A DNA stretch of 64,000 nucleotides, taken from assembly GCA_905178155.1 (NCBI GenBank), contig CAJINV010000012.1, positions 1,616,492 to 1,680,491 of the forward strand, read 5' to 3'. Of this stretch, positions 13,101 to 59,878 are shown piece by piece (positions within the stretch are counted from its first letter, which is position 1; every line of letters begins with the position of its first letter). Below the pieces are notes generated by a model, which worked only from the letters and a program-made list of their open reading frames with translations, was not told the DNA's origin and searched no databases. The DNA is from Amoebophrya sp. A120. Its lineage: Eukaryota; Protista; Dinoflagellata. The position numbers and the translations under genes were made by a program.

Positions 13101-15136
13101 CACAACAAAAAAGGTTCACCACAAGAACTCGCCACCCGAGCAAAACTAGAAACGACTTCCACCTCGAAGATAAAAAGTGGATCAACAAATAAAACCACCT
13201 CTGCGCCGGAGAGAACAAGTGGCTCCTCGTCGTTCACCCCAACGAACCAGTCTCACACGACGCAGTTTTGCGTGATGGACTTTGCGGGTAACGCGGTCTC
13301 GTTTATTCAGTCCAACTACAACAAATTTGGCACGAATTTCGTCCCGGAAAGCTGCGGTTTTACCCTGCAGAATCGCGGGGCGAATTTTCATCTGCGGGAT
13401 ATCAAATTCAAAAATTTCTGGGTCTGGAAGAATGCGCGATTTGTCATGCAGCGTTTCCATGACCCATGACGTCTGGAATGCGAGACCCAGCATGACAGAT
13501 TCTTTGAGGTCTCTATCATGCCTGTCCTGCATGAGAAACTCCCTCTCAACTTGGTCAAAAGGGGACAGCTGTTGGCACTCATGCAACACAGATTTCTGCA
13601 TGATTCGGATTTAGCATGACAAGTTGCAATCTTCCAGACCCAAGCATTTTTGCATTTCATACGGGACAAATATCACCCAAATTGCGTCGCCGGCGGGAAA
13701 CGGTATCCTGTGCAAAAGTATCGTACTCGTATTGCAATCATGCATTGCAAATCTTTTTCTTAAAGTAAATCAGCATTATAAATTTTCTTTCTCATGCTGA
13801 GGAGATTCATTTATACGAGTACGATACTTTTGCAATTCATAAACGGAGCTATCATACGATTATCCCCGGATTGGCCACTACGGTAGGAGTAGGACGAGGA
13901 ACTTCTTGTAAATTAGAGCGACGAGGAGGGGAACAAGATATTAAGTCTTCATCTTCGCGAACAAGCACACTTTTGATGAATTTGGCTTTCGTGTTCGGAA
14001 ACATGGGGGGCTTCATGCAGCCACAAGGACATGTGCAGCTGGTCCACAATTTGATTGACCGAAAGATGGACCCGCAGAGGGCGATATGCATCTTCGCAAA
14101 TATGGTCTTTGGGTCTGGAAGAGTGCTGCAACGTTTGCTATAATGCTTGTTGTAATGCTCGAGCCTGTCATGCACGTAAGAGCCTGTTTTTTTTGTCACG
14201 CGGACGAGACGCAGTTTGTCATGCAGAATGCTCTTCTACACATATTACCATCTCAGAAACTTGTCATGGCGGGCGGTCGAAAAATTTTGCGGTACGAGAC
14301 CCTCATGAAGACTCGCCGACCAGCATGATCACAAATTTCCAGGCCACGACATATTTTTTTGCATTGGATAGGCGATTGACTTTCCCAGATTTTGCATCCA
14401 GCCCGCGGGAAACGCGGCGCCGCGGATCATTCGTGATAGGCCTGATGGAATAAAGAAGATGAACTTGGTAGACCACGGCTCTACTACTTCCCAGGACGAG
14501 GAATCGCGACCGGTTGATGTTACTGGTTCTACCACTGTAGCAGGAGCAGGAACAGCGCCAGGATTACTCTTTGATGCCCCGGATGAAAGAGCGACAACCA
14601 CAACCCGAGAAAACTGCGAAAACAGAGCTACGATTTTCCTTGAGCGAGGGCTTGTGTTTGAGAAAGAAGAGGACTTGGTGCTGGCAGTGGACAAAAACCA
14701 CTGTGCAGATCAAAAACATTTATTTCCTGACCCTCGCGCAGGAGATGAACCGCAGCACAATGATGTTGCGTCGAGAAGCATTTCAGTTTCTCCTGCATCG
14801 TGTCCACCTGCTAGAAGAAAAACAAATTGTGGCCTCTTCAGCAAGAACAATCAACTTGTGTTTGCCGACGGGGCGCAACGGGCGACTTTTGGCCGGGCAC
14901 AAATCATTGGGTATGCGGATTTGATGCGTGGTCGTGGGGAAACAAGCCAAAGCACCAGCAGGGATGTTGCAAAGGAGAACGAGATCGGAAGTGGGGAAGA
15001 TCTTCACGACGCGAGGAGAAATAATTCAGCTGCAGCGCCAGTAGAAGTACAGAAGCAGTTTTTTAGTAGAGTCAGATGCGCGGGGTCTGAAAGTAGATGT
15101 GACGGTTGTGTATTCTCTGTGCGGAAAGTGATATAA
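10134..15136 (+). CDS. ggt: gamma-glutamyltranspeptidase / glutathione hydrolase family protein; 8 introner introns
   Basis: Spliced motifs [58 protein letters not shown], nucleophile region [30 protein letters not shown]...[30 protein letters not shown]; start may be 10158. Confidence 0.93.
10324..10471. mobile_element. Introner family B (reverse orientation)
   Basis: TIRs; DR GGTCC/GGGCC; interior is the reverse complement of 13704-13841. Confidence 0.87.
10819..11075. mobile_element. Introner family A
   Basis: TIRs; perfect DR CGTCA. Confidence 0.9.
11706..11964. mobile_element. Introner family C
   Basis: TATCACGAGAAAAAAG / CTTTTTTCTTCGGATA; DR CAGGG/CAGCG; restores PPNGQGIAAL. Confidence 0.85.
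12154..12369. mobile_element. Introner family C
   Basis: TATCGCAAGAAAAAACTGTTTCACTGT / ACAGTGAAACAGTTTTTTCTTCCGATA; perfect DR CTTTC. Confidence 0.9.
12528..12837. mobile_element. Introner family F
   Basis: ~35-bp TIR TATGGAAGCGTCAGGTTTGAAATCGACAAAGTTGA / TCAACTTTGACGATTTCAAACCTCACGCTTTCATA; perfect DR TGAGT. Confidence 0.9.
13400..13661. mobile_element. Introner family A (intact relative of the element split by the retrotransposon)
   Basis: TIRs; perfect DR CGGGA; interior has CATGAGAAACTCCCTCTCAACTTGGTC uninterrupted. Confidence 0.9.
13704..13841. mobile_element. Introner family B
   Basis: TIRs; perfect DR AACGG. Confidence 0.9.
14085..14370. mobile_element. Introner family A, degenerate
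   Basis: Degenerate TIRs; perfect DR GGCGA; restores RAIDFPRF. Confidence 0.85.
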
Positions 15137-26468: not shown

Positions 26469-29400
26469 ATGCCGGAACAAGCAGAGAAAAGCTCAAGCAG
26501 CTCCTCCCCGGGGCGGCGATATCATAGGAGAAGTTTAACATCCGACGTCCCAGCCGCCGAGGTCGAGCCTTCCGGGGACGTTTTTCTTGTCAGCAAAACG
26601 GAACAAGTAGATGGACCTCCTCCTGCGGTGGGGTCTGCATCTTCCGGACGACGTGGCACAGGAACAAACAACGTCTTCGCGGGGGTAGTCGTTGTTCCTG
26701 CTTATGAGCATCATGATCTACTTCACTCGAGCACCAGCAGTCTGACAGAGCAAGCTGCCCAACCAGAAGCAGGAGATGATCTTCTACCGCAGGAGGGTAG
26801 TGCTAGTGCTCGACGTTCTGGAAAGCCTGTTGTTCCGGAAGTGGGTCACGTAGAAGTGACGGTTGAAGATGTTGAGAACAAGAACTCTCGAGATGAACTT
26901 GTTCTAAACCCCGTCGCCCAAGACGAACGACGAGAGCCAGGACCAGTGCGGAAAAATTATAGGGACAATATAAAGCTTGTTTCAGGAGATTTTTATACGA
27001 CGAGTACGCTTCAGCTACAGCTTCAGCCCGGCGAAGACGAGGTGGACCACAGTTTTCGTCTCCGTGGGAGTGGAAGTAGCATCAGGAGCAGCACAAGAAC
27101 CGAAGAAGATGATGACCCAAGCTACAAATTCTATGATCCGACGAGTAGTGGTGCAGCAGATGTTGAAGTCCTTCTTGCAGGTTTTGATACCCATCTACTT
27201 CAAGATGATGGAACTAGTAGCAGTGCTACACCAGGTAGAACTGCTGCATCTTCTACGCCGGCGGGGAGCAAATCTGCATCAGCAGGAGCTGCGAGCAGAC
27301 AGAGTAGACAGTTCCACGAGCAGTCCTCCATGTTACAGCAACTTGACAGCCGCACCGCTGCGAATATGGTCGTGCCACACATTTTTAACAACGACCACAC
27401 GCATTATACCCATACAATAACTCCCTCTAGTATAGCAGCTGGCCCCGAGGAGAGTACAGGAGACGACGGAGGAGGTGGTACTGTCGCGACGAGTATGGAT
27501 CGCAGAAATGTGTGGGTCTGGAAGGGTGCAGAGTTTGTTATGCTTGTCTGGCATGACTGAAGAGTTTGTGATGCGTGTCCAAGAAGAGACCCATGTTCTT
27601 GGCATGCAAAAACGCAGCTTGTGCTTGTCATGCGGAACAAGCCGGAACATATAGGCACGAAAATACTTCTCATGCTTGGCTGTGCATTACAGGGAACTCG
27701 CTATTTCCAGCTCAGCATTACAAGTTTCCAGACCCAGACATATTTGCAATGCATAACAAGCAACTTGTTGGAACAACAACAAGAACCCTTGGCAGGAAAC
27801 AAGGTGAATACAATTGGAGACGGTCGTCCAGATCATGAACAACATCTTCAGCTGTCACAAGTAGATGAAGTCGACCAGCAGGAAAACTACGAGAACCGCA
27901 ACTACACAGCAGGAGCTTCAACCGCTGCTAGTACCACGGCCGCCGCTAGAAGTACAGCAGATAATTCAACATCCGCCAGCACCAGTAGTTTCTTTTTTCC
28001 GGGGTGTTGCAGCCCGTCCGATAGTAGACGTAGTAATTCGACGGGAGATCATCAGGTGGAGCAATTGACGAACTACACATCATTACCATCGACGGGAGCT
28101 GCAGAAGGTGGAGCTGCATTTATTTTACCCTCAACGTCGCACGGTCGCAACTGTATATGGATTGCAAAAATGTCTGGGTCTGGAAGAATGCATGAGTTTG
28201 TCATGCAGATTTTGCATGATTCATGATGTCTGTGATGCATGCCCTAGCATCAGAGATTTTGCGAGGGCTTTCTGATGCTCATACCGCATGAGAAATGCCC
28301 TCTCCGCGTAGCACAAATTACACCTGCTCTTTTGCTGTTCCTGTTCATGCAATACAGATTCTATGTAGAGTCCAAATGCAGCATTACAAGTTGCATTCTT
28401 GCAGACCCAGACATTTTTACATTTGATAATGTAGCTGGAGCGACAAGGAATTGACGGACTTTTTTGGCAATGAGTACTACATATCCTGTGCAAAAGTATC
28501 GTATTCGTATAAATGCAAGTCTTGCATTACAAATCTTTGTCTTAAGGCAAATCCGCGTGACAAATTTTATTTCTCATGCTGAGGAAATTTGTGATGCATT
28601 TATACGAGTGCGATACTTTTGCACTTCATACTACAAGCACGGAGTGGAAAACAGTTCCGCGGCGATTTTGCTCTTTTTCTTCACCTATCCATTGCAAATA
28701 TGTCTGGGTCTGGAAACTTGTGATGCATGTCAGTGAGAAGAAAGCGCACTGTAATGCACTGCCAGGCATGACAGATTTATCCTTGGCTCCGTGTTCTTGC
28801 GTATTCCGCATGAGAAACAGCGCTTTTGCGTGACAGATAAGAGGAGCTCTTGCTGGCCACGCAATACAGAGCTCAGTGTCATGCCCGACTAGCGTGACAA
28901 ATCCCGCATTCATCTTCCAGACCCAGACATATTTGCATTTGATATGACCATTTACGTCGCCTACTATTTCGGCTTTTACATCTATCGCAAGAAAAAAGTG
29001 TTACAGTTACACATTGTGTTGCAGGCCAAGCAAGACAGACCAGCTCTGTCATGCCGGATACGCATAGATTCTATGCCTATGAAACGGGAAATAAGGTGTT
29101 CTCCCGTAGGATTTTTACGTTACAAGTTTTCTCTCTCATGCAGAGAAATTTGTGTTGCTGAATTGACTACAAATGTGTAACTGTAACACTTTTTTCCTGG
29201 GATAACATCCGGCGGATGTGCTCCTTCAACGAGATTCCCGAAATATCAAATGCAAGTATGTTGTTGTCCTCTGGGTCTGGAAGGATGTTGCGAAGAACTT
29301 GTGATGCGCAGTTCACAACACACACAAATCTCTCATGCCTAGGCAGCAAAAGACGCCCACTTCCTGTCACCAAAGTGGGGGCGGGGTTTCTCATGCGGAT

Positions 29401-32400
29401 TAATAGGCATTGCGGAAGCTTTTGGAAACCTGTGATGCTAGGGCTTCAGATCAGACCTTCTGTGTCATGCAAAAACAGCATCACAAACCCTACCCAGATG
29501 ACACGTTTGCATTTGATACGCAGCCCGGATGAACTTCTCCAACGTTTTCCTCCTATGCACGAAAAAAACTGTGTAACTGTAATTTTCTTGGAGGATCAGC
29601 ATCACAAGTTTGCTCTGCATGACACAGAAAACCTGTCATGCGTAGCTAGTACTTGAAAACACGTACGAAAATAGCCTCTGAAGAGTCATGCATGTCCAGC
29701 ATGACAAGCGTAAACAGCTTTGCATTTTCTGCAACACAAAGTTACACTTACGCAGTTTTTTCCCGGGATATCTCCTCTGGGGGCACCAGTGTCTGTTCGC
29801 CACCATCGCCATCATCGACGGCCGCAAGGCGTTATCAAATGTAAAAGTGTCTGGGTCTGGAAGACAGGAGGAGTTTGTCATGCACATTTTCCATGATCCA
29901 TGATGTCTGTGATGTAGTACGCCATAACATCACAGATTTTTTGAGCGCCTATCGATGCGCATCCTGCATGACAGATGCCCTCTCCGCGTAGCCAAAGTTG
30001 ACGCCCCTTGCTGCTCATGCAATACAGATTTCTGTAGCATCCAAGTGCAGCATCACAAGTTTGGCTCTTCCAGACCCAAACATATTTGCAATCCATAGGC
30101 GTCTGTGTTGCAGCCGGCGGAATTCGTGTTCTGGGTGAAACTATCAACTGCAAAAATGTCTGAGTTTGGAAACTTGTGATGCAAGTCCGTGAACAATAAG
30201 TGCTCTGTAATGCGCCGCCAAGCATGACAAGTTTTTTCGTGCTTCTGTGATGCGTATTTCGCATGAGAAACTGCGCTTTTGCATGACAGGCAAGAGAAGC
30301 TCTTGGTGGCCGCGCAATACAGAGTGCAGAGTCATGCCAGACTAGCATGACAATCTTCCAGACCCAGACATTTTTGCATTTGATAGAAACTGCTGCAGAC
30401 CTGGGCCTACATGACCGCGGGCGGGTTCTGGTTCAGTTGCTGCCTCAGCATCTACTGTACGCAATACAAATTTCCCGGGCATGCACAAGATGCATCACAA
30501 ATTTCACCAATTTGGAATGCAACACTTGTCATGCTAAACTAGTATCGAAGCCCAGTTTCTTTTGTCATGCAGAGACTGCGTTTGTACGTGTGCGGGAAAT
30601 TTACTGTGGATATACTGGGATCTTCCCAGCAGTCGACGGAAGAAAAAGAGGAAAATCGGTGGTACTGGGGATGACGAGGACGGCGGTAGTTTACGGGACA
30701 GCGACGGACGACGAATATGAGAGTGCACAGCGCTCCGTCCCCCTCATTTTAGGCCACGCATGAACAGCAATACAAGCATCAGCAAGAGTGCAGGTTTTGC
30801 ATGACAAATTCGCGCAGGAAGATTGTAGTGGTTTTTCTGCTCCTGGCAGAACTTGTCATGCAAACGGTGCCAAGAGGCAAAGCAAACAAAGCGTGGATTT
30901 GGTATTTTGCGATGACAAATGAGGGGGGCTGTTCGGGTTGTGCACTCTCATAAGGAACTTCCAAATTGTTCCAAACCTCCTCGGGCGAGGAAGAGGAGGA
31001 GGACGAGTTTTTGCCTTATCTGGGGAGCTATCCACTGCAAATATGTCTGGGTCTGGAAACTTGTGATGCTGGTTTCTGGCTTGTGGGCGCACTGCGTTAC
31101 GCAGCCACGCATGACAAGTTTCTGATTTTCTATGTGTTTCGCGTCCCGCGTCCCGCATGACAGACTGCGATTTTGCAGCATGACAGGTAAGAGGCTGCTT
31201 TCCTGCTCATGCATTACAGATTCAAGAGTCAACATGCGAGACAAGCATGACATATAAACTTGCATTCTCCCAGACCGAGACATATTTGCACTTGATAGCA
31301 GCAAGGCGGCCGTCGACGACTTGGAAAGAGTTCAAATCGTCAACAAAACTTCTACAGGCACCTCCGGGCAGCATGAGGAACATGTCGAAGATGGTGCTGG
31401 TCTAACGAGCGTAATAAAAACGGCCAGCGCGGCTGCGGCTGCGGCCAGTGCTTCGAAAACATCAACACCGTCTCCTGTTGAAATAAAGCAGCAAGAGGAC
31501 AAGAATCCAGCATCACCCAAGACGAACTCCGCGTCCCCGGGAGCAGATCGCGAGCCGCTTTTGCGCTCGAGCACATTTTCTCCGGAGGATGAGCTTTCTG
31601 GCCTCAGCTCCTTTTCGCAGGACATCATCTCAGCACTGACGCTGGTATCAAATGCAAAAATGTCTGGGTCTGGAAAAGTCGTGTAGACTTGTCATGCTGA
31701 TTTTCCATTACCCATGAGGTCTGGAATGCGGGACTTAGCATGACAGACTCTGCGAGGTCTCTGCCATGCCTATCCTGCATGAGAAACTCCCCTCCAACTG
31801 CATGAGAAACTCCCCTCCAACCGTAGCCATTTTGGCTCAAGCGACATCAAAGGGCAAAATTTACAGTAGGAAACGAATCAGAATTAAGTTTAGAGCTTCC
31901 ACCTTATAAAGTTGATAGACACACAGTTAGCGTAAGAAGTAAACACAAGCGACATTATACTTAGTTTTGGAAGAAAGTGTAAGTGAAAGACAGCAGACGC
32001 GGCACGCAGGCGAAGTCCTAAGGCCGAGTCACGAGCTGCGGAGCATCACAAAATAACTGCCCGCGAGAGAAGGCAAAAAGAAGAGAGACAGGAGGAAAAG
32101 GAGAAAGAAAGAAGAAGCTCGCCAAAAATGGGGAGGGGAAAAAAGAAAAAGTCGGCGGCCGGCCCATGCCGCGACAAAGAAAATCACACTAAGTTTGTGA
32201 ACATCGAAGCGGAGCAGTTGATGGAATTCCTGGGCCAGCTGATAAATCAGGATCCGGATACGATCCAGATGCATTCCCGAGAGGGGTGCGACAAGACAGC
32301 TGCGGTGCTGTGGATGGAAAAGCGGACAGTTGTGAGATTCTGGAACAGTGGCACGCTGATGCTCCAAGGGGACGGCGCCCTGATGGCCGACTTGTTTGAG

Positions 32401-35400
32401 GAGTTCCTCGACACAGGCGAAAACGTCGACGAGAAACAAATCGGAACCGGAGAAGTGATCGAGTGGAAAGAAGATCAATACCTCCGCCCGAGCAACCAAA
32501 TGAAAACGGCACTCGAATGGGAAAAAGAAGCAGCGAAGGCGGGGGGGGAGCAATGGGGAATGTTGAACCAGGCCCCGTACGGAAAGAAAGGAAAGGGCTA
32601 CTACTGGCCCGAGGAAGTGGGTTACGGAAACTACTCGGACATGGGCGGAGGAGAGTATCTGTATCAAAATGAAAGCAAGGGGAGCGGAGAATACGAGAAG
32701 GGCGGGGGGTTCTACGACGACTGGGAAGCAGAACAAGAGGGCGACTACGGGAAAGGCCTTGCAAAGAAAAAAGAGGGAAAATGCAGAGCCTTCTACTCCC
32801 AATGCGACGACGGGAAAGAAGAAGGAGAAAAAGAAGAATACAACGAAACGGAAGACGGAGCCCAATTCACAACCAAGGTGAAGGGGGAGCCGCAGGCGCG
32901 CCAGGAGTACGAAGAGGAAATGGTGGCGGATTACGGACCCGGAGGCGAAGGAAAAGCGAAAGGGGACACGGGCAAAAACGAATGGGGACAACACGGGAAG
33001 GAACAGATGACGAAAGGAAAAGGATGGGACACGGAGTGGCCCCACTACGCCACCCCCATGTACGGTCCCAAATCAGGCCCGTACGGAGGAAAAGAAGGAA
33101 TGGAACACTGGTACAAGAAGGGCGGAAAAGGAAAAACGCCCTACGGGAAAATGGGAGAGAAAGGAGGATGGGACTGGGGAAAAGAAAAAAACTGGTGGGC
33201 TGCGGGCAAGGGAGTAGGGGACGGAGGGCACGAAAACTATAACTACGGAAGCGGGACAAAGTGGGGAATGGGCGGAAGTGGATACTACTAGCGGACCCAG
33301 GGTGAGCGGATAGCGGAAGAGCGACGGGATAAGCCGAAGGGAAGCCAGAGGGAGCAGATAGAACACGATGAGAATGACAACAGGAGAAAAAATATGGCAC
33401 AGTCAGAAGACACGAATGAACGATAAGGAGACAGCGATGCGATTGCTTGCCTCGGTTTTGAGTACGATGCTAGTTGTGCTTTTCAGATTACTTACAAATT
33501 TTTGAGTGGCTAGATAGAAGGGGACAGAGGCCTGCATGAAAATAGAGAATGAGGAAGAAAAGCGCATTACTTCACGGAAGGAGTAGATGCGGTAGTTAGT
33601 CTTGTCTCGTGATAGATCTAAGCAGCAGCGTGCGCGCGTAGGATGCGAAATGTAGTGGGAATAGTGCTTCATTAAAGGCGATCAAGAAATGATATGAAGG
33701 CGAAACGGCAGGAGCTTGCTCGGCAACTAGAAGAGATCGAAGCAGGTAGGAAGGTAATGAGCTACGCAAACTAGTTAGAAAAAAAGATCAAAAAATGGCG
33801 CTCCTAGTGCCACGCTTCAAGCCACCGCCGAAGAAAGAGAAAAAAGAAGACGTGCGAAAATTAGACCGGCTGAGCACGCTCCTGGAGGAGATGGAGAGGG
33901 ATACCGAGAAGCTGCGAAAAAAAATAGATGAAGAGGAAAAAAAACCAAAAGAAAGAGCAACGATAGCCGAGCTAATAGAGGAACGGGAAAGCGACACAAT
34001 ATTGACAGGGAAGGCGAAGCCAGCCATGACGATAAAAGATATAAACAAAAGGAGGGGGAGCATGAAAATGCGCCTACTAAAGAACCTTATAGAAGTACGG
34101 AGGAAGAGAAAGACACCCATGACAAAGTGGCTGCGTAGGACGCCGGAGAAAGACGCATCAGGCAGGACGCTAACAATGAAGCAGAGACAGCATATGGCGA
34201 GGGCAATGAGATTGAAAGCAGGGGCCGAAAAAATGAAAAAGCTGTTCGCTGCAGCGATAGAAAGCAAAGAAACAAACACGGAGCTGGAAGACGAGAGAGA
34301 CAAGAAGAGGGCGCTAGGGATAGTCCGTCTGAGGAGGATGAACAGAATACAATGGAAGATACACATCGGCGACGACATGAGAAGGCGGAGGGTGCAGAAT
34401 AAGAAAAAGAAAAAAGAAAAGGCTCAGCTGAGCAAGGATAGAAAAGAAACAATAAACACAAACTCGAAGAACGCACGGAAGCGACTAGCGCAAGCGCTTG
34501 AGTCGGAGGAAGGACACAGAGAATGGCAGAAGCGGGCTCGAGAGCTAATAGAGACGAAATCATATAAAGGGAGCAAAGCCCTAGTTAGATTGACGCGGGC
34601 CGAAAGATTAGAACACGAAAAGAAGAGAAAACAGCGGGCAGCACAAGGACAAGCAAAAAGGACGAAAGAAGCCCGGAAAAGGGAAAATGGCACACAGAGA
34701 GCAGACCGGCTGCGGAAAATTCAGGAAAAAAGAAAGAAAGCAGAGTGAAGGGCGACGGTGAGGAGCGCAGGCGGCGGCTGAGGAATGTGTGCAAGTTAAG
34801 AGGAAAAAACGGGGCCGCTGTACAGACGAGATCCAAGAGAGAGAATGGAGATCAAAATAAAAACGGATAGGAATAACAAAAAAGATGAGAAAGCCGCAGG
34901 GCACCTAGAGAAAAAGATGGTAGAGATGTGCAGTGTGTTCAAAAAATATAAGGAACCCAAAAAGAAAAAAGCAGCGACGAAGTATACTGGTGAAGCAGAG
35001 AGAAAGCGTTAACTTAGAGTAGTAGACTAAGTAGAAGTAGTAGACCTTTTGAACTTACGACGAAAAAGCAGGAAAGTAGCGACCCCCTCCTTATTCTGAG
35101 TTTAGTTTTAATTTATTCTTTTTATTCGAAGCAGTTTGGATAGTGTATAGCTAGCGTAGCATTAGAATGAGCAGTCGGTCCTGATAGTCAAAAACAGTAA
35201 GAAAACAAAGACAAGATGGACCAGAACGAGGGGGATGATGATAGAAAACGGCAGGAAAGCCTGCTACCGCGGGAAACCCCGGAAGGAAGAGAAGACAGCA
35301 CAAGGAGGACGGACACAGAACAGAGGGAAGGTGAGATGGAGGAGGAAAAAGAAGAGCGCAATGATAATGAAGAGGAGCCAGACGGGATATGGAGGGGAGA

Positions 35401-38400
35401 AATGCAAGAAGAAATGGGGGAAGAAGAGAAAAAAGAAAGAAATGACGGGCAAGATGATTTAAGAAGAGAGCGACATATGTTCTGGAATATTAACGGGGTG
35501 AAGCGTCTGAATGCGATTAGGCTAGTGAAAGCTTACAGAGACATAGCGCCAAAAATTACAGGGGCGAGCTGCGCCGAGTTGAAGACCGCCGCGCTGACAC
35601 AAGATCAGGCAGCGTTCAAACATGTAGAAGAGGAGATGAAGAGATTAGGACTAGAGGGGAGGCCAGGAATATACTTCGCAGCCGCCACAGACATGAAAGG
35701 CGTGGCGTCAGAGATGAACTCGGGAGCGGTAGGAATCGTGTACACAGACGAAACGAAGAAGCTACCAAAAAAGACAATGAGAAAGGAGATTTTTCGAAGG
35801 GAAAGGGGGGGCGCATTCTTCCAGAGAGATGCGACAGACAAGGAGGGTATACTTTTATGGATGATCGCAGCAGAGGACGAAAGAGGAATGCTAGTGGTCG
35901 CGTTCTATCGGAGACCGGCAAAGGACACACCGAAGGACAGCGAGGAGGTAGCACACATAAGGAAGCAAATGCAAGAAATGACTTCAGAACTCGAAAAGAT
36001 GATAGAAGAAGCAGGAATAGCCATACTGGCGGGAGACCTAAACTGTCAGCATCAAATTGATGAAAGGGGAAAGGTGAAATTCGAGAGGGAGCGGACAGGA
36101 GTGCAAAAAGTTTACTTCAGCGAAATAATAGAACCGATACAGAAGATTTTCAACAAACATGCTGAAACACTTACAACAGGAGGCCCGACATGCTTCCGAA
36201 ACCCGGAAAATCCGACAGCGATCGATATAGTAGCGATAGCGGAAAAAAGGGCAAAAGTTGTGGCGAAGACCTGTGAAAGAATTCAAATACCGCGGACAGT
36301 AAAAGAGGAAAACGGAGAAGATAAGGAGGTAGAGGGGGAGAATAAAGAAGAGGAGTCGGACCACGTAGCTCTGCTAGCAGACATAGTGTGGATCCCAGAG
36401 CCCGAGAAGCCCACAGAAGAACAAAAACAGAAGAAAGAAAAAGAGCAAAAGAGGTGGAAATTTAATGCGCGCTATACGCTGATGGTGCCGACAGTTGAAA
36501 GCTCAAGGCAGCGAATTGAGATCATAAAAGGGAAAGAAAGACTTCAGAAGAAAAACCCTGTCACGCAGCTGGTGAAATGGCCGAGAAAGTCGGTGACGTT
36601 AGAAAGACTACAGCAGGTGATGGAAAAAGCAGGGACGGCGCCAGAAAATCGCAGGAGCATGCTAGGGATGCAAAAATGGCTGATGGAGAAGCTAGGCGAG
36701 GCAGGCGTGCTGAAACTCAAAGAAGTACCGAAACAGGACGCGAATTACGAAAATTGGCAGAAGAAGAAAAAAGACGAGCGAAAAACGCAAGAGAAAGAGG
36801 AGAAGAACGAGGAAACCGCACGACGACAGGAGCAGAAATCGAAACAGGACGAAATGGAAAAGACATGGCTGGCGTCATTCGCAGAAAAGCCAAAAAAGGA
36901 AGAGAAAAATGAGAAAGCGGTTTATGAGACGGCTAGAAAGGTAAAAGAAGCTGTGTGCGGGGTAGGCAGAGGAATGCCGATGGGGGAGGCGAAGGAAGTA
37001 ACTGTAGGCGGCACACTAGTGCAAGGGGTGGAAGCAGCGACAGAAAGGATAGCGAGTAGCCACCTCCTCAAGTGTGAATTCGTGAGAAAGCAAAATGACA
37101 AAAAGCACGCATATGACGGAAAAGAGCTTGAAAAAGCGCCACGACAGCTCACGCAAGCATGTAAAGAAGTAAAGAGCGTACGACTTACGGGGCCACAATT
37201 ACAAGCCCATGTCTCAAAATTAAACAGTGAAGCAGCAGGCATGGATGGGCTCCGACAAGGAATATACCGCGCCCTTACACCAGAACAATACCAAGTGTTA
37301 GCAGAGGTGTTTAGTAGGTTTTTAAAAGAAGTGGAGGAGTATGAGATGAAGCAAGCGAAACGAGGGAAAGGGGCCGAAGCTCCTGGAGGAGCACCTCAAT
37401 GCGGTGCAGGTGGAGCTGTTGAAAAAACAAACAGCAGCAACAACGGCAATAGAAAAGATCCGGACCGTGATACAGGGGACAGCGGTAGTGAGGGTGTTGC
37501 TGAGCGTAGTGGTATATGAAATGGCGCGGGTAGCCGACAAAAGTGACGCACTCACCCGATGCGGATCAGCATCAAAACCAGGAGCAAGCTGCCAAGCCAC
37601 AGCGCTGCAGGTCCTGGAGACATGTCACGAGGGGGAAGAGAGGGGCGAAGCGGAAACACCGGACGAAAGAAAGGAGGGAGGCAATGGGCAAGAGAAAAGA
37701 AGAAAGGAAGCGGGAGTCTTTGGGCTAGATGCGTCCAACTATTTCAACAATATAGGGCTACCGAGGGCAGTAGCAGCATACAGAGCTGCAAAACTACACC
37801 CGTGTTTCATAAAGTTGATAATAGTAACAGCGTGGACGAAGGACTTATGGATCAGAAACGGGGATTGTTGCGGACACGTGCTAAGACGTCGCGAACTTAT
37901 TCAGGGCGCAGTAGAAACGATGTTAGCGGGGACCCTGATTTTCCTCCCAGGAGTAGAAATAGTCGCGGAGTTCCTCGAAGAAATCTTTAATGAAGACGGT
38001 AGGGCTGAAGAGGAAAGGCTAAAAGCAGCAGATGCCAAGATGAGAACGAGGATTAAAAGGCTTTACAAGGGGGGCGATATCGATACAACTTTCCCCGATT
38101 ACAATGTCAGAGAAGAAGCCGACGAGATCTACCTTAAAGAAGCCCCGCCAGTAGTCACGGGATACAGAAAGGGAGAGAAGGCAACGACAGAGCAGGGAAA
38201 AAGAAAGGTGGATGAGAAAGGAAAAAGGGTGGAGACTCGATACTACTCCGGAACACTCCCCGGAGATGGGAAAAGAAGATGGACCCTATGCGTGCAATAC
38301 GTGGACGACGGCACAGTTGTAATAAAGTTCTTTATCGAAGATATACAAATAGTAGCGCGCGCGCTCAAAGCGGCAAGCTGGGCATATGAGGAAATCTACG

Positions 38401-41400
38401 CAACTGAAGGACAATTCTTGGCACCACAGAAGTGCGAAGTTGCAACGTCGATAGAAGACCCGCTGAGGGTAAACGTGATCCGACAGGCTTTCCAGCCTTT
38501 CGGGATTCTGTTCGAGGAAAAGACATTTCTGAAGATTCTGGGGATCAAAATAGTGCCAAAAGACAAAACGGAACAAGCCAAGGCCCTGAGGGGGCAGGTC
38601 AGACAAAGTATAGGGATAGGACAACGCTTGGCGTGCCAAGTAATGGCGAAAAGGGGAAGGCTTAACGGCGAGGAACTCACGTGGGTAGTGCAGGTTTTCT
38701 TTGTGTCGGCAGTGATATACTTCCTGCCAGTGATGCATTTATATTTCGACCTAGGAGACTGGGCGGAATTGATGGGCGAAATGGCGCTGACAATAGCTGA
38801 AACACTGGGAATGACAACGGAGGCAGTGGAAGAGCTGATGGCCCGAACAGAAACAACGGCGGAGACATTCTACAGGGTAGTGCTCGGGATGAATTTACTC
38901 GGACTAGCTGACCCGTACGCGATGGGACTGAAAACGCTACGCGCAACGGCGCAGGCAAACTACCTAACAGACCCGGCCTTGTTCGCACCATTAGCAACGA
39001 CGCCAGTAAAGGTAGTAGGCGAAGCAAAGGCGGGCATCCCGAAAACAGAAGAACGAAAAATGCTGAAAAGAAAAGAAGCCGACATAGCACTGCTGCGGGC
39101 GCTGAAGGATGGCGCGACAGTTAGGCTATCGCCGGGAAGCGACCTGCGTGCAGTGGGGATCGTGAAGGAGAGAAGCGCGCGGGGTCCCCCAAGGGTAGAG
39201 GATCAGTATACACACAGGGGGAGCGCGGGTCTGGTAGTCAGCAGGAACAGAAAAGGAAGCCTCGGGAAGAAAGGGCAGGGCGATAGGATGCAAAAAATAT
39301 GGGTGAAGCATGCCGGAAATGAAAGAAGTACAACAGTCACAGTACAAGAGGCAAGTGAAAGGACGGAGACACACCTGAGGACGATAGAGACAAAAGTGGA
39401 GCACTTAAAGACTGAAATAAGAACAGAGGAAAAGACTTTCGTGGCATACTGCAACAACGCAATGAGGGCCATAGAAATAGCCACAGAGAGGAGAAAGAAA
39501 GAAGGCGGAGCGGCGCAGATTATACTGCTGGACTGCCACGAGTTAAGGGAGAAGACGCGGGGGATATTACGAAAAGGGCATGGAATAGGCTTGGAGCTAC
39601 AGGAGACAATAGAAAAAGCCGAAAGTGAGGACCCGGGCCTAACTATAGTAACGAGATGGGGAAAAGGAACTGCAAGCAGAGCAGAAGCGACAAGAAATAT
39701 AGACGGAGGGACCAAAGAAGAGATACCGCTCAGGGTGGCGAACGTGCTAAATCACGACAATGAGTGCACGGACTGGGTGCGGTTCGACTTCGGAACGAAG
39801 CGGATTCCATTGAAACCGGTGTGGGAATGGCCGGAAATGTCAAAAATAGAAAGGCAGGTATACATACATAGGAAAATGAAAGACAAGGAGACAGAAGGGG
39901 ACAAAAAGAAAGAAAATGTAGAAGCTGGGGACGGTGATGAAATGAAGCGAGGCTTAGGAGAGAAAGACAGCGCGAAATCTCAAAAGAAGAAAGAAACGAA
40001 AAAGAACACCAACACAGAGAGGATAGGAAAGGAGAGTGGCGCTGCAAGCAGTCAAAGTAAAAGTAGCCGGGCAAATGTAGAAAGAAAGCAAGAAGAAAAA
40101 GGGGAAGAAAGAAGGGAAGGAGAGACACTTTCTGAAACTATGCTGCGACTAATCGAGAAAGAGAAGAAGAAAGCAGAGGAAACTGGTGACGAGATGGCGC
40201 AGGGGGCATTCAGAATAATCCAAAAAGCGACGAAACTGTTGCAGGAGGTAGAGGAGGCGAATAAAGAAGACGATGGTAGAAAGTCAAACGAAAAAGAAAG
40301 GGGACGGGAGGAAGGAGACCAAGAAGAAGGGATCAGCGAAGACGGAGAAGAGGAAGAAAAAAAAAGCTTCTACGGGGCGCAAGAATATGAAGGCACTCGG
40401 AGAGGATACGTGTTCAAAAGAGGGGCGATGGGACAGGGATACTATATAGATCAAGGCCCAGAAGAGGCAACGCGAGCACTTTTTCGGAATCTGGTGGCGT
40501 GGGGGGAGGGTGAGAAAAGGGACGCGATTAATAAGGAGCGGGCGGAGGAAGGTCGAGATGAAAAAGAGGCGGACCAAGAGCAGCAAAAACGGAGAAAAGT
40601 GGAGAAACAAGACAAGAAAGCGAACCAAAACGGTGGAAACGTAGACGAAAAAAAGAAGCAAACGACGGAGGCCTCTAACTTCCCCACAGTCGAGAAATTA
40701 ATGGCAGATGACCCCATGACATTGATGAAGAAAGAGAAAGAACAGCGGGAGAAGGAGCCGAGGATGCAGGAGGAGAAGAGGAGGAGGAGGCAGATGCAGT
40801 ACGAAACTCCTATGCAGCGAGAATTAGCCCAAATGTATAGAGTCCTAGAAAAAGAAAACAGCGATGGAAAATGAATGAAGAAAGAGAAAATAGTGACTGC
40901 AGTGTGTTTCTTCTTTTTTGGAGGAGATTGATGAATGGATAGCAAAGTAGAGGCAATAAGAGACCTCATACGTGAATGAAATAAAGGAGCAAAGAAGACA
41001 CAGACCGGGGCTCAAGGCGAAAAAGGCAAATGCGGGGTGTTCTGGCGGGTGCAGAGGGAAGAGTGTAGACACAAAACGGAACAGAAAAGAGCGAAAAAAA
41101 TGATGTGACTGCGTATGGACCTCGTTTCGACACGTTCCCGCCAGCCCGGAGGGGTGCGGCGATGCTAATCATTTCGTTCCCGCCAGCCGTAAAGGCACGG
41201 CGCTGCTTTTCCTCTCCTTGCACCGGCGAACCGCATGCACTGACGCGCTAGGAAACGAAAAGAAAAAGAAAGAGAAGAAAGAGAAACTATATAAAAGAAG
41301 TGGTGCCAGGGTTGCTAATTTAAAAGACTGCGCTAATGCAGCACCCCCCTTCCCCAAGGGGTCCCCCCGGGGCGGGCGCGATGGCGGCTCTGCGAATGCG

Positions 41401-44400
41401 GAGCTCCGCGGGCCGTTTCTATGGAAACGCATAGAAAAGGGTGCGGGAAGAAGATCGGCAAAACGTGTCTGAAAGGGACACGCCGTTGGGTCGCCCGCCA
41501 TCGTGGTAGGATCACCGTGTCTGATCATTAGACCCCCTGTATACTTTTTAGCGCGCAACCGGCCACGCGCGTAGTTCTTCGAGCAAGTTTGTAAGACTAA
41601 CCCATCAAGGCAATACTGGAACTCCACCTTGCTCGCGGGCTTGGATGGTAAGGCAGGTCAGCCACACATCGCGCCCACTGGTTGCAGCCATGCGTAAGAA
41701 ATCGATAGCGGTTCTGCAGGTGCAGTCGGGTGGTAGCTAGGAAGTGGACCGTGTCTCCACCTAGGGGTATCGGCAGAGGCTAAATCTGTTCTAACGCCCA
41801 GGTATTGGCAGAGGCTAAATCTGTTCTAACGCCGACCCGCCAGGAGTTAAATGGTACTACTACTACTCAACTTGGTCAGAAGTGTACAGCTTTTGGCACT
41901 CATGCAACACAGATTTTCGCATGCTTCAGATTTACCATGACAAGTTGGAATCTTCCAGACCCAGACACTTTTGCATTTCATAACTGGATTCCCAGTCGAA
42001 AAAGGAGCGGAGAAAGTCGTCCGATAAAATGTATCACCTGCGGCAAAAGTATTAATAGTAATTGGGAACAGTCCAGTAGCAGCAACAGTTCTAGCATGAA
42101 AAGGAAAACTCTCTACACTTTCCACGTGTTTTGGCATGATTGAGAAATTGCGTTTTTCTTCTTGAAAAAAAATCGTAAAGATAATGCAATTTCCTCATTT
42201 TGCGATACTTTTGCAAGAAAATGCATAAAGTGCAAAGGGAGCTGATTTTTCGGTACGTGCAGCTGGTCTACTTTGGCCTCGCGCTGGTCATCATGATCGA
42301 CACCACCTATTTCGACTTTGCGGAGCAGTACCTTCCCTCTATTGCCATGCTGACCCCCTTGTTTCTCAGCGTGTTTGTCACCGGATTGTACCTGAAGCGA
42401 GAATATCAAGCGCAAATATGTCTGGGTCTGGAAGAATCCTGCATGTTTGTCATGCTTCTCTGGCATGACTCTCAAACCTGTCATGCACGTTACCCAAGAG
42501 CACCACTTTTCTGTCATGCAGAAAGAAACGCAGTTTGTCATGCAGAATAGGCAACACCTCCTAGAAGCTCAGAAACTTGCCATGCTGAGCAAGCACTTGT
42601 GGCCTCCCCAGGATACGCCACCCAGCTGCATCACAAGTTTCCAGACATCCAGGGATATTTGCTCTTGATAGAGAAAACCAGCTGCATGTGACCGGAACGC
42701 TGCTGCATCATGCTGGTCGGGCGACCCGGTTAGACTCCTCGCAAGTCAGCAAGAAGTCGCAGTCGGTCGAGGCGTTGCTCGAAGACCGCGAGAGGCAAGC
42801 GATGTATCACATAGAAAAAAGCAGGCATAATTTGTAATGCAAAAATAAATACACACAAAAATCTGTACTGCGCATGATCCTAAACAGCATGCTATGGGGC
42901 CGCCCATGGTAAATTTTTCTGTGTATTTCTTTTTGCATTACAAATAGTAAATAGGCTCTACTTCCTGCTTTTTCCTCTGGGATACGATGCACAATCTGAT
43001 CATCGGCCCGGAAACGACACCGGCGGACGCGGCAGAAGATGTCGCAGGTGGCGCCTTTCGAGGACGCACAAGTAGTCAGGACAGCTCTCCGCAGGAGAGC
43101 TTGCTGTCCGACACTGACTATGATGAAAATCCAGCTGCTGGTGCGCACGACCATCTGATGCCGCGGTCTCATGTTTCCTCCGCGGAACAAGACCTGCGTG
43201 ACGCGACAGCGGAGTGCGAAAAAACCGCTTCGGATCTACTGGCGCTGCAGCGAAGAACGAGCGCAGGTTTTAATAATTGCTGAACTTTTTTAGTGGCTAA
43301 GCTTTTTGGATGTGGATATTTTTTCCTACACCACACCGTGCGACCTCTGTAGAAGTACAACTGTAAAACGGTACTCGTTTTTTTGATGAAAGAAGGGCCA
43401 TCAGGTTCCAAGCACTTCTACTTTGTTTGTACCGGCATGTAGGAGGTCTTGAGAATTTTATTGAAAAAGAAGCACGACCCTATATCATGCGATGAATGAG
43501 AATAAACCTATCAACGAACTACTGGCCACAGATCTTGCCGACGCAGCAAAAGCCATGGATAAAACGGTGGACGAATTGGTCCGGCACTCCAACAGGCGAG
43601 TGAGCGCCTTGCGCGTGCATTTGCAGAAGAAGTTCACGCATTTTACCGCCAAGTTCACCGAGCACCACTACTCCCCCACGGGGAATTTTATGATCTACGC
43701 GATGGGCAGTTTGATCGTATTTTTCTCTTACGGTGCGAGCAAGTGGGTGCACTCCTACTGCTATGCATTGCAAATATGTCTGGGTCTGGAAGATTCTTTC
43801 TTACATTTGTCATGCATGTCTGACATGACTCGAGAATCCGTGATGCATGGCCACGAAAAGGCTCTCCTATCTGTCATGTAAAAACGTTGTTTCTCATGCG
43901 GAATACGCAACACATCGCAGCTCAAAAATTTGTCATGCGTGGCTGCGTATTGCAGTCCGGCTAAAAGTGTATTACACTTTTAGCATTACAAGTTTCCAGA
44001 CCCAGACATATTTGCAGTTGATAACTGCGGCCCGGACTTTTGCAAGCACCCGGAGAACTGCGTCATCGCGTTCCTGCTCCCGCACTTCAACCACACCGCA
44101 ATCTGCACGTTTTGGATCGGTATCAAGTGCAAAAATGTCTGGGTCTGGAAGATTGCAAGGTTTGTCATGCACATCATTTTGCATGGCCCGTGATGTCTGT
44201 GATGTATGCCCCAGCATCACAATTTTTTTGCGGGCATCTTGATGCCTATCCCGCATGAGAAATGCCCTCTCCGCGGAGCTAAAACTGGACGCCTCTTGCT
44301 GCTCATGCAATACAGATTTTTTTAGATTCCAAAAATAGCATCACAAGTTGCATTCTTCCAGACCCAGACACTTTTGCAATCCATAACCGGGGTCGGCATT

Positions 44401-58654: not shown

Positions 58655-59878
58655 ATGCCTCCGGACAATGATCCCCACCAACCTTACGTCGAAGACGATG
58701 ATCTGAACACGGACGAAATCCAAGCAGCGCGCGTGCTCCACGCCGTGAGCAGTTCGGAAGGAAAGTTGAAGCTGGTGAAGGACAACTTTGTTGCTGATAC
58801 GGAAATCGAAATCGAAAACAGCGGCTGCAATGCTAGTACTTCATCGAGCAACCCCTGGCGTCCCTTAGTCGAGGACGTGGCTCGGCGGAGTTACAGCTAT
58901 GTTTGCAGGTTTGTGCAACAAGGAAAGCAAGACAAAAGTCTCGACGACTCAACCCCCTCTACAACTTCCTCCTCTTTCACGAAATCAGAGCTCGACTCGT
59001 GGTTTCGGCAGCTGCACCCAGACACCCTCGGCGTAAACACCACCGGCGCGTGGACGGATGCGTACTACAAGGGAAGTCTGCTACTGCGGAAGACCGCGTG
59101 GTGCGTGTTTGATGAAAGTTGCGAGTGCGAATACGGGTACTCCGACACGTGGCAGAAGCAGATCACGAATGCGAAGATGAAGGACTGTCTGTGGGAGATC
59201 ACGGCCAGAGTGAAGGAGATCTGCGGACTGGTCAACAGTAGAGCACTACAGGATGGAACCAATCATGATGAAAAGCACGCAGAAGATGAGCTGATAAACT
59301 GCGTGAACCTAAACTACTACCCAACAGGCGGCGGTGTAGGGTTCCACGCGGACGACGAGTTTCTGTTTGATGGGCTGAACCGAGACACCTGCATCATCTC
59401 TTTGTCGCTGTGCAGCGCTGGTGATAGCCCTCCATCGAATGACCAAAAATCCGAAGAGCAGCCTGTTCGAGTTGCTGATGACCAACGGCAGGACCAGGAG
59501 GAAGTCGCGCATAAGTCCGGCGCGCGCAAGTTTCAGGTGCGCTTGAAGAAAGCGTTTATGAAGAAGGATGACCCGCATGGGATTGGGACAACTGGCAAGA
59601 ACGCTGGACAAGGAAGTGGCGGCTTGCCATCAGCTGCGAACTCTTCAGGGAATCCTGAAATCCACGAGGTCATACTGAATCACGGAGACCTGATGACCAT
59701 GGAGGGCTTGTTTCAGCTGTATTACCTGCACTCGGTGTGGCCGGGGGACGATCGGAACTACAAGGAGCACCCATTAACGCAGGGAGAACGGATCAATTTG
59801 ACTTGGCGAACGATCGTGAAGCATTTGGATGGGAGTGAGGAGTGCAGGGGGATGAAATGTCCCTTGGTGGAGGGCTGA
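58655..59878 (+). CDS. AlkB-family 2OG-Fe(II) dioxygenase (ALKBH2/3-like), intronless
   Basis: RKTAW, YGYS, NCVNLNYY, GFHADDE (HxD), IISLSL, LNHGDLMTMEG, YLHSV, RINLTWR. Confidence 0.9.
   Translation: MPPDNDPHQPYVEDDDLNTDEIQAARVLHAVSSSEGKLKLVKDNFVADTEIEIENSGCNASTSSSNPWRPLVEDVARRSYSYVCRFVQQGKQDKSLDDSTPSTTSSSFTKSELDSWFRQLHPDTLGVNTTGAWTDAYYKGSLLLRKTAWCVFDESCECEYGYSDTWQKQITNAKMKDCLWEITARVKEICGLVNSRALQDGTNHDEKHAEDELINCVNLNYYPTGGGVGFHADDEFLFDGLNRDTCIISLSLCSAGDSPPSNDQKSEEQPVRVADDQRQDQEEVAHKSGARKFQVRLKKAFMKKDDPHGIGTTGKNAGQGSGGLPSAANSSGNPEIHEVILNHGDLMTMEGLFQLYYLHSVWPGDDRNYKEHPLTQGERINLTWRTIVKHLDGSEECRGMKCPLVEG

Follow-up and report, generated by a model that had tools for sequence, protein, structure and literature searches.

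[quoted passage not shown] In Symbiodinium, the functions of genes with DinoSL relicts and of RT genes showed no overlap, and the two processes were treated as independent (bioRxiv 10.1101/783902). In Schistosoma mansoni, genome-encoded SL exon sequences are fused to transposable elements that were possibly trans-spliced and retro-transcribed, with assembly chimera left as a possible source (PMC5832876). Here we describe a 10,048-bp LINE-type non-LTR retrotransposon of Amoebophrya whose 5′ end is the 22-base DinoSL; it contains three ORFs and terminates in a (TAC)4 repeat. The window analyzed is 64,000 nucleotides of Amoebophrya sp. A120 (GCA_905178155.1, contig CAJINV010000012.1, positions 1,616,492–1,680,491 of the forward strand). 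Like relict-DinoSL retrogenes, the element bears a genomic DinoSL at its 5′ end, and tandem relicts elsewhere in the A120 genome show recycling. Unlike them, it would represent the retrotransposon's own mRNA, with a (TAC)n rather than a poly(A) tail, a fixed target and two alternative acceptors. It shares with the Schistosoma cases the fusion of a genomic SL exon to a transposable element, whereas the Amoebophrya junctions map to acceptor sites and are confirmed in reads, in two sister copies. The SL-headed retrotransposon is real, and it is a variant, not seen before, of the known relict-SL retrocopy.

LINEs and spliced leaders are also associated in trypanosomatids, where SLACS, CZAR and CRE1 insert into SL RNA genes and the SL piece is target DNA. 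Other LINEs target transposons or repeats, such as Tx1L in Tx1D and the microsatellite- and snRNA-gene-specific elements. Utopia is a further LINE that targets other transposons or repeats (PMC4640811). The Amoebophrya element resembles the first group in its LINE–spliced leader association (see PMC3636483), but the SL is not its target, and empty introner sites have no SL. With Tx1L/Utopia-type LINEs it shares a fixed multicopy target, a short repeat tail and variable 5′ truncation, and it differs in inserting into an intron-forming TIR element, the introner. Introners are introns of host genes (PMC7789003); the available text of a 2025 PNAS paper ascribes some A120 introners to non-LTR retrotransposons and does not describe homing (PMC12130899). 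R2, other co-transcribed LINEs with a 5′ HDV-like ribozyme, and L1Tc (Pr77/L1TcRz; PMC3383444) are likewise site-specific and sit within a transcribed multicopy host unit, and their 5′ end must therefore be released from the co-transcript. In the Amoebophrya element, by contrast, no ribozyme was found; SL trans-splicing would both process and cap the RNA, although it is seen as a relic and not as an obligatory route. The endonucleases differ as well, being EEP/APE-type here and restriction-like in R2.

Coding capacity and introner target of the element

All parts of the element lie on the + strand. The 5′ UTR of the ORF1-led mRNA (31842–32127), which is unique in the genome and aligns to a relative on contig 4 from its first base, is followed by ORF1 (32128–33291; 387 amino acids, with a G/K/Y/W-rich C-terminus) and ORF2 (33795–34748; 317 amino acids, very basic and K/R/E-rich), neither of which matches a Pfam family. 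A pyrimidine tract ending in AG (35079–35133), a predicted internal trans-splice acceptor, precedes pol (35216–40874 overall). In the window copy, pol is split into two overlapping frames: an N-terminal part with an EEP/APE-type endonuclease, a linker and the start of the RT (35216–37519), and a C-terminal part with the RT palm and its YVDD, the thumb and a long K/E-rich tail (37350–40874). The 3′ UTR (40875–41854) contains a 33-nt direct repeat (41766–41798 and 41801–41833) and leads into a (TAC)4T tail (41855–41867). Every part that the first-pass annotation had listed, from the 5′ UTR and two accessory ORFs through the APE endonuclease and YVDD-bearing RT to the 3′ UTR and (TAC)4, was borne out. 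A 4-nt insertion near 37349, private to the window copy and absent from three others, interrupts the frame of pol, and the copy on contig 3 carries pol as a single uninterrupted open frame of 1,911 codons. All three ORFs show dN/dS values of 0.12–0.28 (ORF1, 0.28 against the contig-4 relative; ORF2, 0.21 against the contig-3 copy).

Pfam did not detect the RT, and the uninterrupted frame of the contig-3 copy gave the same outcome; phmmer and profile searches against PDB sequences gave nothing significant for it. An AF2 model of the RT part (pLDDT 73, pTM 0.75) nevertheless found R2 (E 5e-9) and LINE-1 ORF2p (2e-7) as its top folds, and the motifs DxxNxFN, QG and YVDD are conserved in the homologue alignment. 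By modelled fold and motifs, pol contains a non-LTR-type reverse transcriptase. For the nuclease, a weak, sub-threshold match to Pfam Exo_endo_phos_2 coincides with invariant D..N and DH motifs, and the AF2 model of a homologous intact copy (pLDDT 68, pTM 0.73) matched EEP enzymes (2e-8) and the L1 endonuclease (6e-7); the predicted structure is that of an N-terminal EEP (apurinic-endonuclease-like) nuclease.

The 3′ end is common to at least 50 scored genomic copies (81–98% identity in the 3′ UTR), few of which extend to the 5′ part. The tail, of about 3 to 8 TAC units, forms the 3′ end in all of them, and a repeat search found no terminal direct repeats (LTRs). The family thus bears the hallmarks of target-primed reverse transcription (TPRT): copies share a 3′ end with its repeat tail, differ in the extent of 5′ truncation, show target-site duplications (TSDs) and lack LTRs. 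Among 1.84 billion representatives we found 11 homologues, and all eight that were checked are Amoebophrya. The element probably belongs to an Amoebophrya-specific family of APE-type non-LTR elements that insert by TPRT with the introner center as their fixed target.

The host introner flanks the element as a left arm (31646–31797, + strand; TIR 31646–31680, preceded by the 4-nt direct repeat CTGG at 31642–31645) and a right arm (41868–41982, + strand; starting with CAACT, TIR 41948–41982), and the two TIRs pair. The left arm has at least 1,400 candidates in the genome, 40 scored copies being 96–99% identical, and empty introner copies are continuous across the insertion point. CAACT occurs on both sides of the element, giving a TSD of 3–5 nt, compared with 16 nt for the contig-3 copy and 11 nt for the contig-4 relative. 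Every copy examined lies within an introner, and the equivalent introner point is the insertion site at 28 of 30 3′ junctions and 4 of 4 5′ junctions, in introners of several families. Independent copies therefore share a target position whose empty sites were recovered, as in site-specific LINEs. Pfam-supported ORFs of the window lie on the + strand on both sides of the element, and 13 of 17 introners share one orientation; the element probably lies on the sense strand of a co-oriented gene block. As to the host strand, reading frames stay open across the introner on both strands, and the exon 3′ of the introner, with exons searched separately, gave weak, conflicting zinc-finger and RPB10-like matches.

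A complete spliced leader at the 5′ junction

Positions 31820–31841 (+ strand) match the complete DinoSL exactly (ACCGTAGCCATTTTGGCTCAAG), as the first-pass annotation had claimed for the first 22 nt of the insertion. The SL 21-mer occurs once in the window against 0 expected (100 shuffles). The SL is followed by CG (CGACATC and then the element 5′ UTR) rather than a GT donor, so this is not an SL RNA gene, which would consist of SL exon, GT donor and SL intron. The lack of any Rfam match at the SL fits this. SL-RNA intron sequence is absent from the junction, where the 22-nt exon stands alone. A short-read contig (run X5) crosses introner, duplication, SL and UTR (31770–32185) without a difference, and X5 depth of about 55 at the junction, about 49 along the element and 44 in unique flank corresponds to a single copy. 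Neither misassembly nor a cDNA artefact accounts for the 5′ junction.

The SL had been placed directly after the introner. The introner does adjoin it, but a duplication intervenes: the introner's left side ends in a 23-nt stretch (31775–31797) that is repeated in tandem at 31798–31820 with 100% identity (+ strand; repeat search), and 28 empty introner copies lack this repeat. Because the second duplication copy ends at 31820, where it overlaps SL position 1, A31820 may derive from the target and not from the SL.

Relatives and the processed-mRNA reading

On contig 18, another copy has a full SL (TCCGTAG...CAAG) joined exactly to the equivalent of window position 35134, 82 nt before the pol ATG, and this junction is also present in X5 contigs. 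In the window copy, the sequence upstream of 35134 is ...TTTTATTCGAAGCAG, where AG follows the strongest pyrimidine tract that the element has outside coding sequence; the one other tract of ≥72% pyrimidine between SL and pol stop lies inside pol coding sequence. The window and contig-18 copies are sisters (80 shared derived sites versus 5–8 for other splits). Besides the window copy, just one relative extends to ORF1; this relative, on contig 4 (68–84% identity), has no SL and continues about 2.3 kb further 5′ into a unique leader, which holds an internal poly(A) run and may be composite. A 5′-transduced host sequence was considered as the source of this leader and rejected, as it has no second genomic copy. 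Homology between the contig-4 relative and the window 5′ UTR begins exactly at the SL junction, after ...GAACAG|. The AG before the ORF1 acceptor is visible in this relative alone, since in the window copy the SL stands in its place. A relative on contig 2 has its 5′ end about 95 nt before its own pol ATG, about 25 nt downstream of the acceptor-equivalent site, which suggests that a pol-only template recurs.

We favor, with a probability of about 0.72, the reading that the SL is a relic of a trans-spliced element mRNA that was reverse-transcribed by TPRT into the introner center, the primary unit having had a longer leader. The RNA template would have been a mature, SL-trans-spliced element mRNA, which would explain why the element begins with a DinoSL. 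Each SL junction is represented by one example, with the DinoSL at the exact 5′ end and AG at the parental site; for the ORF1 site, the parental sequence is that of the 68–84% relative. Two SL sites in sister copies, together with AG in the longer homologues, suggest that the SL marks retrotransposed, processed element mRNAs. From these junctions and acceptors we infer trans-splicing of the element RNA, and from the contig-4 relative the leader of the parent. SL acceptors would exist at two or more points of a multi-ORF primary transcript, one lying 286 nt before ORF1 and another 82 nt before pol, and reverse transcription of each mRNA would run up to the cap; the window copy would stem from the ORF1-led mRNA and the contig-18 copy from the pol-only mRNA. 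The unprocessed unit probably had a longer 5′ leader, like that of the contig-4 relative. As trans-splicing would remove such a leader, the SL reads as a remnant of how the RNA was processed and not as a demonstrated means of replicating without a promoter. The earlier proposal of an SL-trans-spliced intermediate copied to its very first base is thus strengthened in its first part by the two sister copies, whereas the second holds to the first base or within one base of it.

Alternative routes to a spliced-leader 5′ end

The first-pass annotation had gone further, proposing the SL as a native 5′ end that is regenerated without a promoter. The element would be co-transcribed in sense with host genes from within the introner, and trans-splicing at the AG of the genomic SL would excise it, cap it and restore the same 5′ end every cycle, a functional analogue of the 5′ HDV-like ribozyme of R2. 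We consider this unlikely, though it accounts for several observations. All copies lie inside introners and hence in host-gene introns (PMC7789003); 13 of 17 introners are co-oriented, and Pfam-supported ORFs to the left and right of the element lie on the + strand. An Rfam search of the element and the contig-4 leader found no HDV-like ribozyme and no other family. A full SL also heads at least five further repeat families of the genome (heads read to 400 nt), one of them with 10 copies, several introner-flanked, and tandem relict SLs (L096, L104, L097, L082) represent genomic SL copies that were re-transcribed and re-trans-spliced. The window copy is also the sole full-length member of its sublineage and sister to the contig-18 copy, and could therefore be its parent, which would imply expression without a leader.

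Against such a cycle, 115.5 Mb of sequence contain the SL plus 5′ UTR once, so that the window copy has no daughters, and its pol carries the private frameshift. The only other ORF1-bearing relative has its 2.3-kb leader and no SL, the very case that had been named beforehand as refuting the proposal. Full-length copies had been expected to start with the SL throughout, but collection of the genomic copies yielded a single SL plus 5′ UTR, no SL near any of 10 related APE-LINE loci, and no tandem or truncated relict SL in this LINE family, where single SLs occur in two copies. Neither several full-length SL-plus-5′ UTR copies nor tandem SLs of the family, either of which would mark a promoter-less element, were therefore found. 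The pairing of an SL at C13:2350871 with a LINE 3′ end at C13:2360764, 9.9 kb downstream, was considered as a second full-length copy and rejected, with about 0.4 chance pairs expected and no related nuclease between. The assembly contains no leader-bearing master of the window subfamily. A sense position inside a transcribed host gene is probable, given an intron-forming introner that is probably in sense within a co-oriented gene block; RNA runs X7–X9 (n = 3, same species label) yielded 0 reads, which favors neither reading. It is equally doubtful that introner-homing LINEs in general are promoter-less and transcribed with the host intron, such that trans-splicing at relict AGs or internal acceptors excises and caps them, replaces ribozyme and promoter, and resolves the three-ORF transcript in operon-like fashion, with the window copy as a live template and possibly the contig-18 parent. 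Were the cycle true, the re-trans-spliced RNA of the window copy would read SL + CCATTTTGGCTCAAG + CGACATC.

LINE RTs are known to make template jumps at 5′ junctions, and the SL could have arisen if the RT, having reached the 5′ end of a (truncated) element RNA, had continued on a free SL RNA molecule, much as U6/L1 chimeras form, in which case the SL would say nothing about trans-splicing of the element. The irregular 5′ junction of the window copy, with its 23-nt tandem target duplication, would suit such a jump. We regard it as very improbable, because a jump onto SL RNA would carry the intron part too, whereas the 22-nt exon alone is seen; because both junctions fall at AG acceptors, one behind the strongest non-coding pyrimidine tract (two AGs by chance, about 1 in 256); and because the distances from the junctions to the ORF starts downstream are 286 and 82 nt. 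Least probable of all is a cDNA-derived chimera or a misassembly of an SL-bearing transcript with genomic sequence, which the unique 5′ UTR and the repeat-rich assembly around introners might have suggested, but against which stand the X5 contig across the junction, the uniform depth along the element matching the unique flank, the two arms of one introner that flank the element and match the target site, and the presence of the contig-18 junction in X5.

On the processed-mRNA reading, the sequence of the locus is evidence that SL trans-splicing acts at more than one acceptor on the multi-ORF RNA of a dinoflagellate LINE itself. Processed mRNAs, besides full genomic RNA, would then serve as templates for TPRT, which fits a cis-preference for the pol-encoding mRNA. 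SL-marked retroposition and retrotransposition, which the Symbiodinium work had treated as independent, would be linked. The element is also a concrete case in which to test whether a LINE housed in host introns can rely on trans-splicing instead of a promoter or ribozyme.

Layout and coding capacity of the element

The element opens on the + strand with ACCGTAGCCATTTTGGCTCAAG (31820–31841), an exact match to the 22-nt dinoflagellate spliced leader (DinoSL, or SL), just as the first-pass annotation had described. Throughout the window, which covers contig 12:1616492–1680491, the SL 21-mer occurs once, and it occurs in none of 100 shuffles. Directly downstream lies a 286-nt 5′ UTR, followed on the same strand by ORF1 (32128–33291), ORF2 (33795–34748) and the nuclease and reverse transcriptase (RT) region, pol (35216–40874). 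The element closes with ~1 kb of 3′ UTR and, up to 41867, a (TAC)4T tail. Just upstream of the tail, the 3′ UTR holds a 33-nt direct repeat (41766–41833, 97% identity, spacing 35). The + strand is strongly purine-rich from ~32000 to 41000, with sharp borders. A contig assembled from short-read run X5 spans 31770–32185 with 0 differences, at a depth of ~55, compared with ~49 over the element and 44 for unique flank. Because this contig matches without difference at comparable depth, the SL junction is genomic and single-copy.

Pol has a homologue in Amoebophrya sp. A120 (NCBI protein CAD7924442.1). Domains were analysed on another family member, the contig-3 copy, whose frame is naturally uninterrupted. 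Pfam returned only a sub-threshold Exo_endo_phos_2 match on pol and did not detect the RT, even on this 1,911-codon frame, and PDB sequence and profile searches gave no match. When 1.84 billion representatives were searched exhaustively with HMMER, only 11 relatives emerged, and all eight that were checked came from Amoebophrya. The RT part, modelled with AlphaFold (pLDDT 73, pTM 0.75), matched the folds of R2 (E 5e-9) and LINE-1 ORF2p (2e-7) best, with Prp8 and group II intron RTs ranking behind, and the modelled N-terminal part of pol resembled EEP nucleases (2e-8), L1 endonuclease among them. On these predicted folds, which settle the question, the element is a LINE.

At least 50 family copies share a common 3′ end, and few reach the 5′ part. 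Tails range from roughly 3 to 8 TAC units, target-site duplications (TSDs) are present in the family, and no LTRs were found. The dN/dS values of the three ORFs (0.28, 0.21 and 0.12) show that all of them evolved under purifying selection. A 4-nt insertion near 37349, private to the focal copy, breaks its pol frame, and the contig-18 copy carries its own 4-nt insertion near 38109; in the contig-3 and contig-12b copies the frame is unbroken at these points.

The introner target

The 100 nt upstream of the element are introner sequence, for which at least 1,400 candidates were counted in the genome, and the sequence 3′ of the tail is the right arm of that same introner, whose 35-nt terminal inverted repeats lie at 31646–31680 and 41948–41982. 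In 28 empty introner copies, ...GAGAAACTCCCYTCCAACTTGGTCAAAAG... runs uninterrupted across the insertion point. The equivalent introner point served as insertion site in 28 of the 30 3′ junctions and all four 5′ junctions examined, across several introner families. At the focal 5′ junction, the left side of the target is duplicated perfectly in tandem over 23 nt (31775–31820), and this duplication stands between target and SL. The junction is irregular and may stem from a template jump or from fill-in while the second strand was synthesized. The true TSD of the focal copy is 3–5 nt (CAA/CAACT); that of the contig-3 copy is a clean 16 nt. In the 3′ flank of the contig-3 copy (L065:8700–8990), the TSD is directly followed by another short 3′ piece of the same LINE, and therefore the same target was struck twice. 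Locus L042 likewise holds two LINE 3′ ends, ~950 nt apart. Two loci 3.3 kb apart on contig 33 (L061, 131136–131536; L062, 134460–134860) carry one and the same LINE 3′ fragment within the same flanking sequence, pointing to a local segmental duplication.

The window contains ~20 introners (e.g. 2731–2962, 13414–13647 and 28170–28414), roughly one per 3 kb. Of the 17 scored, 13 share their internal orientation on the + strand, suggesting an orientation bias relative to transcription.

SL junctions at AG acceptor sites

The contig-18 copy begins TCCGTAGCCATTTTGGCTCAAG, joined to the base homologous to window position 35134, 82 nt upstream of the pol ATG, and this SL junction is present in X5 contigs too. 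In the full-length copy, the sequence upstream of 35134 reads ...TTTTAATTTATTCTTTTTATTCGAAGCAG. From the SL to the pol stop, just one further tract is at least 72% pyrimidine, and it lies within pol coding sequence. ORF1 is reached by a single other element in the genome, the contig-4 relative (68–84% identity), whose insertion into an introner of a different family is flanked by an 11-nt TSD. This relative has no SL; in its place is a unique non-coding leader of ~2.3 kb. Its alignment to the focal 5′ UTR begins exactly at the SL junction (CGACAACAAAGGGCAG versus CGACATCAAAGGGCAA), and the two bases preceding the alignment start are AG. At about 5782680–5782740 of contig 4 (overlap of L069 and L032) the leader holds a ~50-A run broken by GGGATATATAT, and because of this internal A run it may be composite.

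Since AG precedes both the contig-18 site and the contig-4 equivalent, both SL junctions coincide with AG acceptors, and at each the 22-nt SL exon stands alone, shortly upstream of an ORF. Trans-splicing of the element RNA predicts this pattern; neither an artefact nor template jumping onto SL RNA does. The two SL-bearing copies group as sisters, a split backed by 80 shared derived sites versus 5–8 for alternative splits. The earlier proposal of an SL-trans-spliced transposition intermediate is thus upheld by two sister copies, both joined at acceptors, and we give a probability of about 0.7 that the focal SL is a genuine relic of a trans-spliced element mRNA.

The contig-2 relative lacks an SL and opens ~95 nt ahead of its pol ATG, at a point ~25 nt downstream of the site equivalent to the acceptor; a pol-only template therefore recurs, which would fit pol acting preferentially in cis, on the mRNA that encodes it. 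The contig-3 copy starts (window 33744–33746; L065:619) 49 nt upstream of the ORF2 ATG, directly after an AG of the full-length copy and without an SL; this could be a third acceptor or a coincidence.

Relict DinoSLs have been described for retrogenes (PMC6050394, PMC12014239). In Symbiodinium, one study saw the functions of DinoSL-relict genes and those of RT genes not to overlap (bioRxiv 10.1101/783902). SL sequences joined to transposable elements are reported in Schistosoma mansoni, with assembly chimeras left possible (PMC5832876). In the literature searched, where incomplete coverage leaves absence unproven, no dinoflagellate LINE headed by an SL came to light.

A possible promoter-less cycle and other SL loci

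The first-pass annotation had further envisaged an element that may need no internal promoter, is transcribed with its host and regains the same 5′ end each round by SL trans-splicing. We consider this cycle unlikely. The SL-plus-5′-UTR unit occurs nowhere else in the genome, and tandem or truncated relict SLs are absent from this LINE family. Regeneration of the SL as the native 5′ end is also opposed by the contig-4 relative, which extends further 5′ through its leader and bears no SL. At 10 related LINE loci that bear the nuclease, no SL lies nearby, and the focal pol is frameshifted. Yet the element always lies within introners, which are host introns, and the shared introner orientation is accompanied by Pfam-supported + strand ORFs on both sides (gamma-glutamyltranspeptidase at 10972, 2OG-Fe(II) oxygenase at 58655) and by the arrangement of A120 genes in co-oriented blocks (PMC7789003). 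No ribozyme was found. RNA runs X7–X9 (2026 RNA-seq, labelled as this species) yielded 0 reads on 6 kb including host sequence; their source is probably another strain, or host with little parasite RNA.

Across the 115.5-Mb assembly, the SL 21-mer has 51 exact and 25 near-exact occurrences, one of which heads the contig-18 copy; L070–L129 denote 60 genomic SL sites. Five near-identical loci on contig 6 and small contigs (L119, L120, L127–L129) read AACGTAGCCATTTTGGCTCAAG then GTTGAGCAAATTCC..., and are candidate SL RNA genes because GT directly follows the SL; L098, with SL + GTACCATATCG, is another candidate. The largest SL-headed repeated family, of 10 copies, opens ACTTTGTCTTGTTGCCTGAGATCC or GCTTTGCC...; within their first 400 nt such families show no resemblance to the focal LINE. 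In favour of the cycle, a full SL heads at least five repeated families other than that of the focal LINE, and in the 10-copy family several copies are flanked by introner arms. Four loci (L096, L104, L097 and L082) carry tandem relict SLs: at one, for instance, the SL is followed by CCAATTTGGCTCAAG, and elsewhere a single nt separates two full SLs. Such tandems are classically the mark of copies that already bore an SL and underwent retroposition repeatedly, and they show that SL-bearing genomic copies were transcribed and trans-spliced again.
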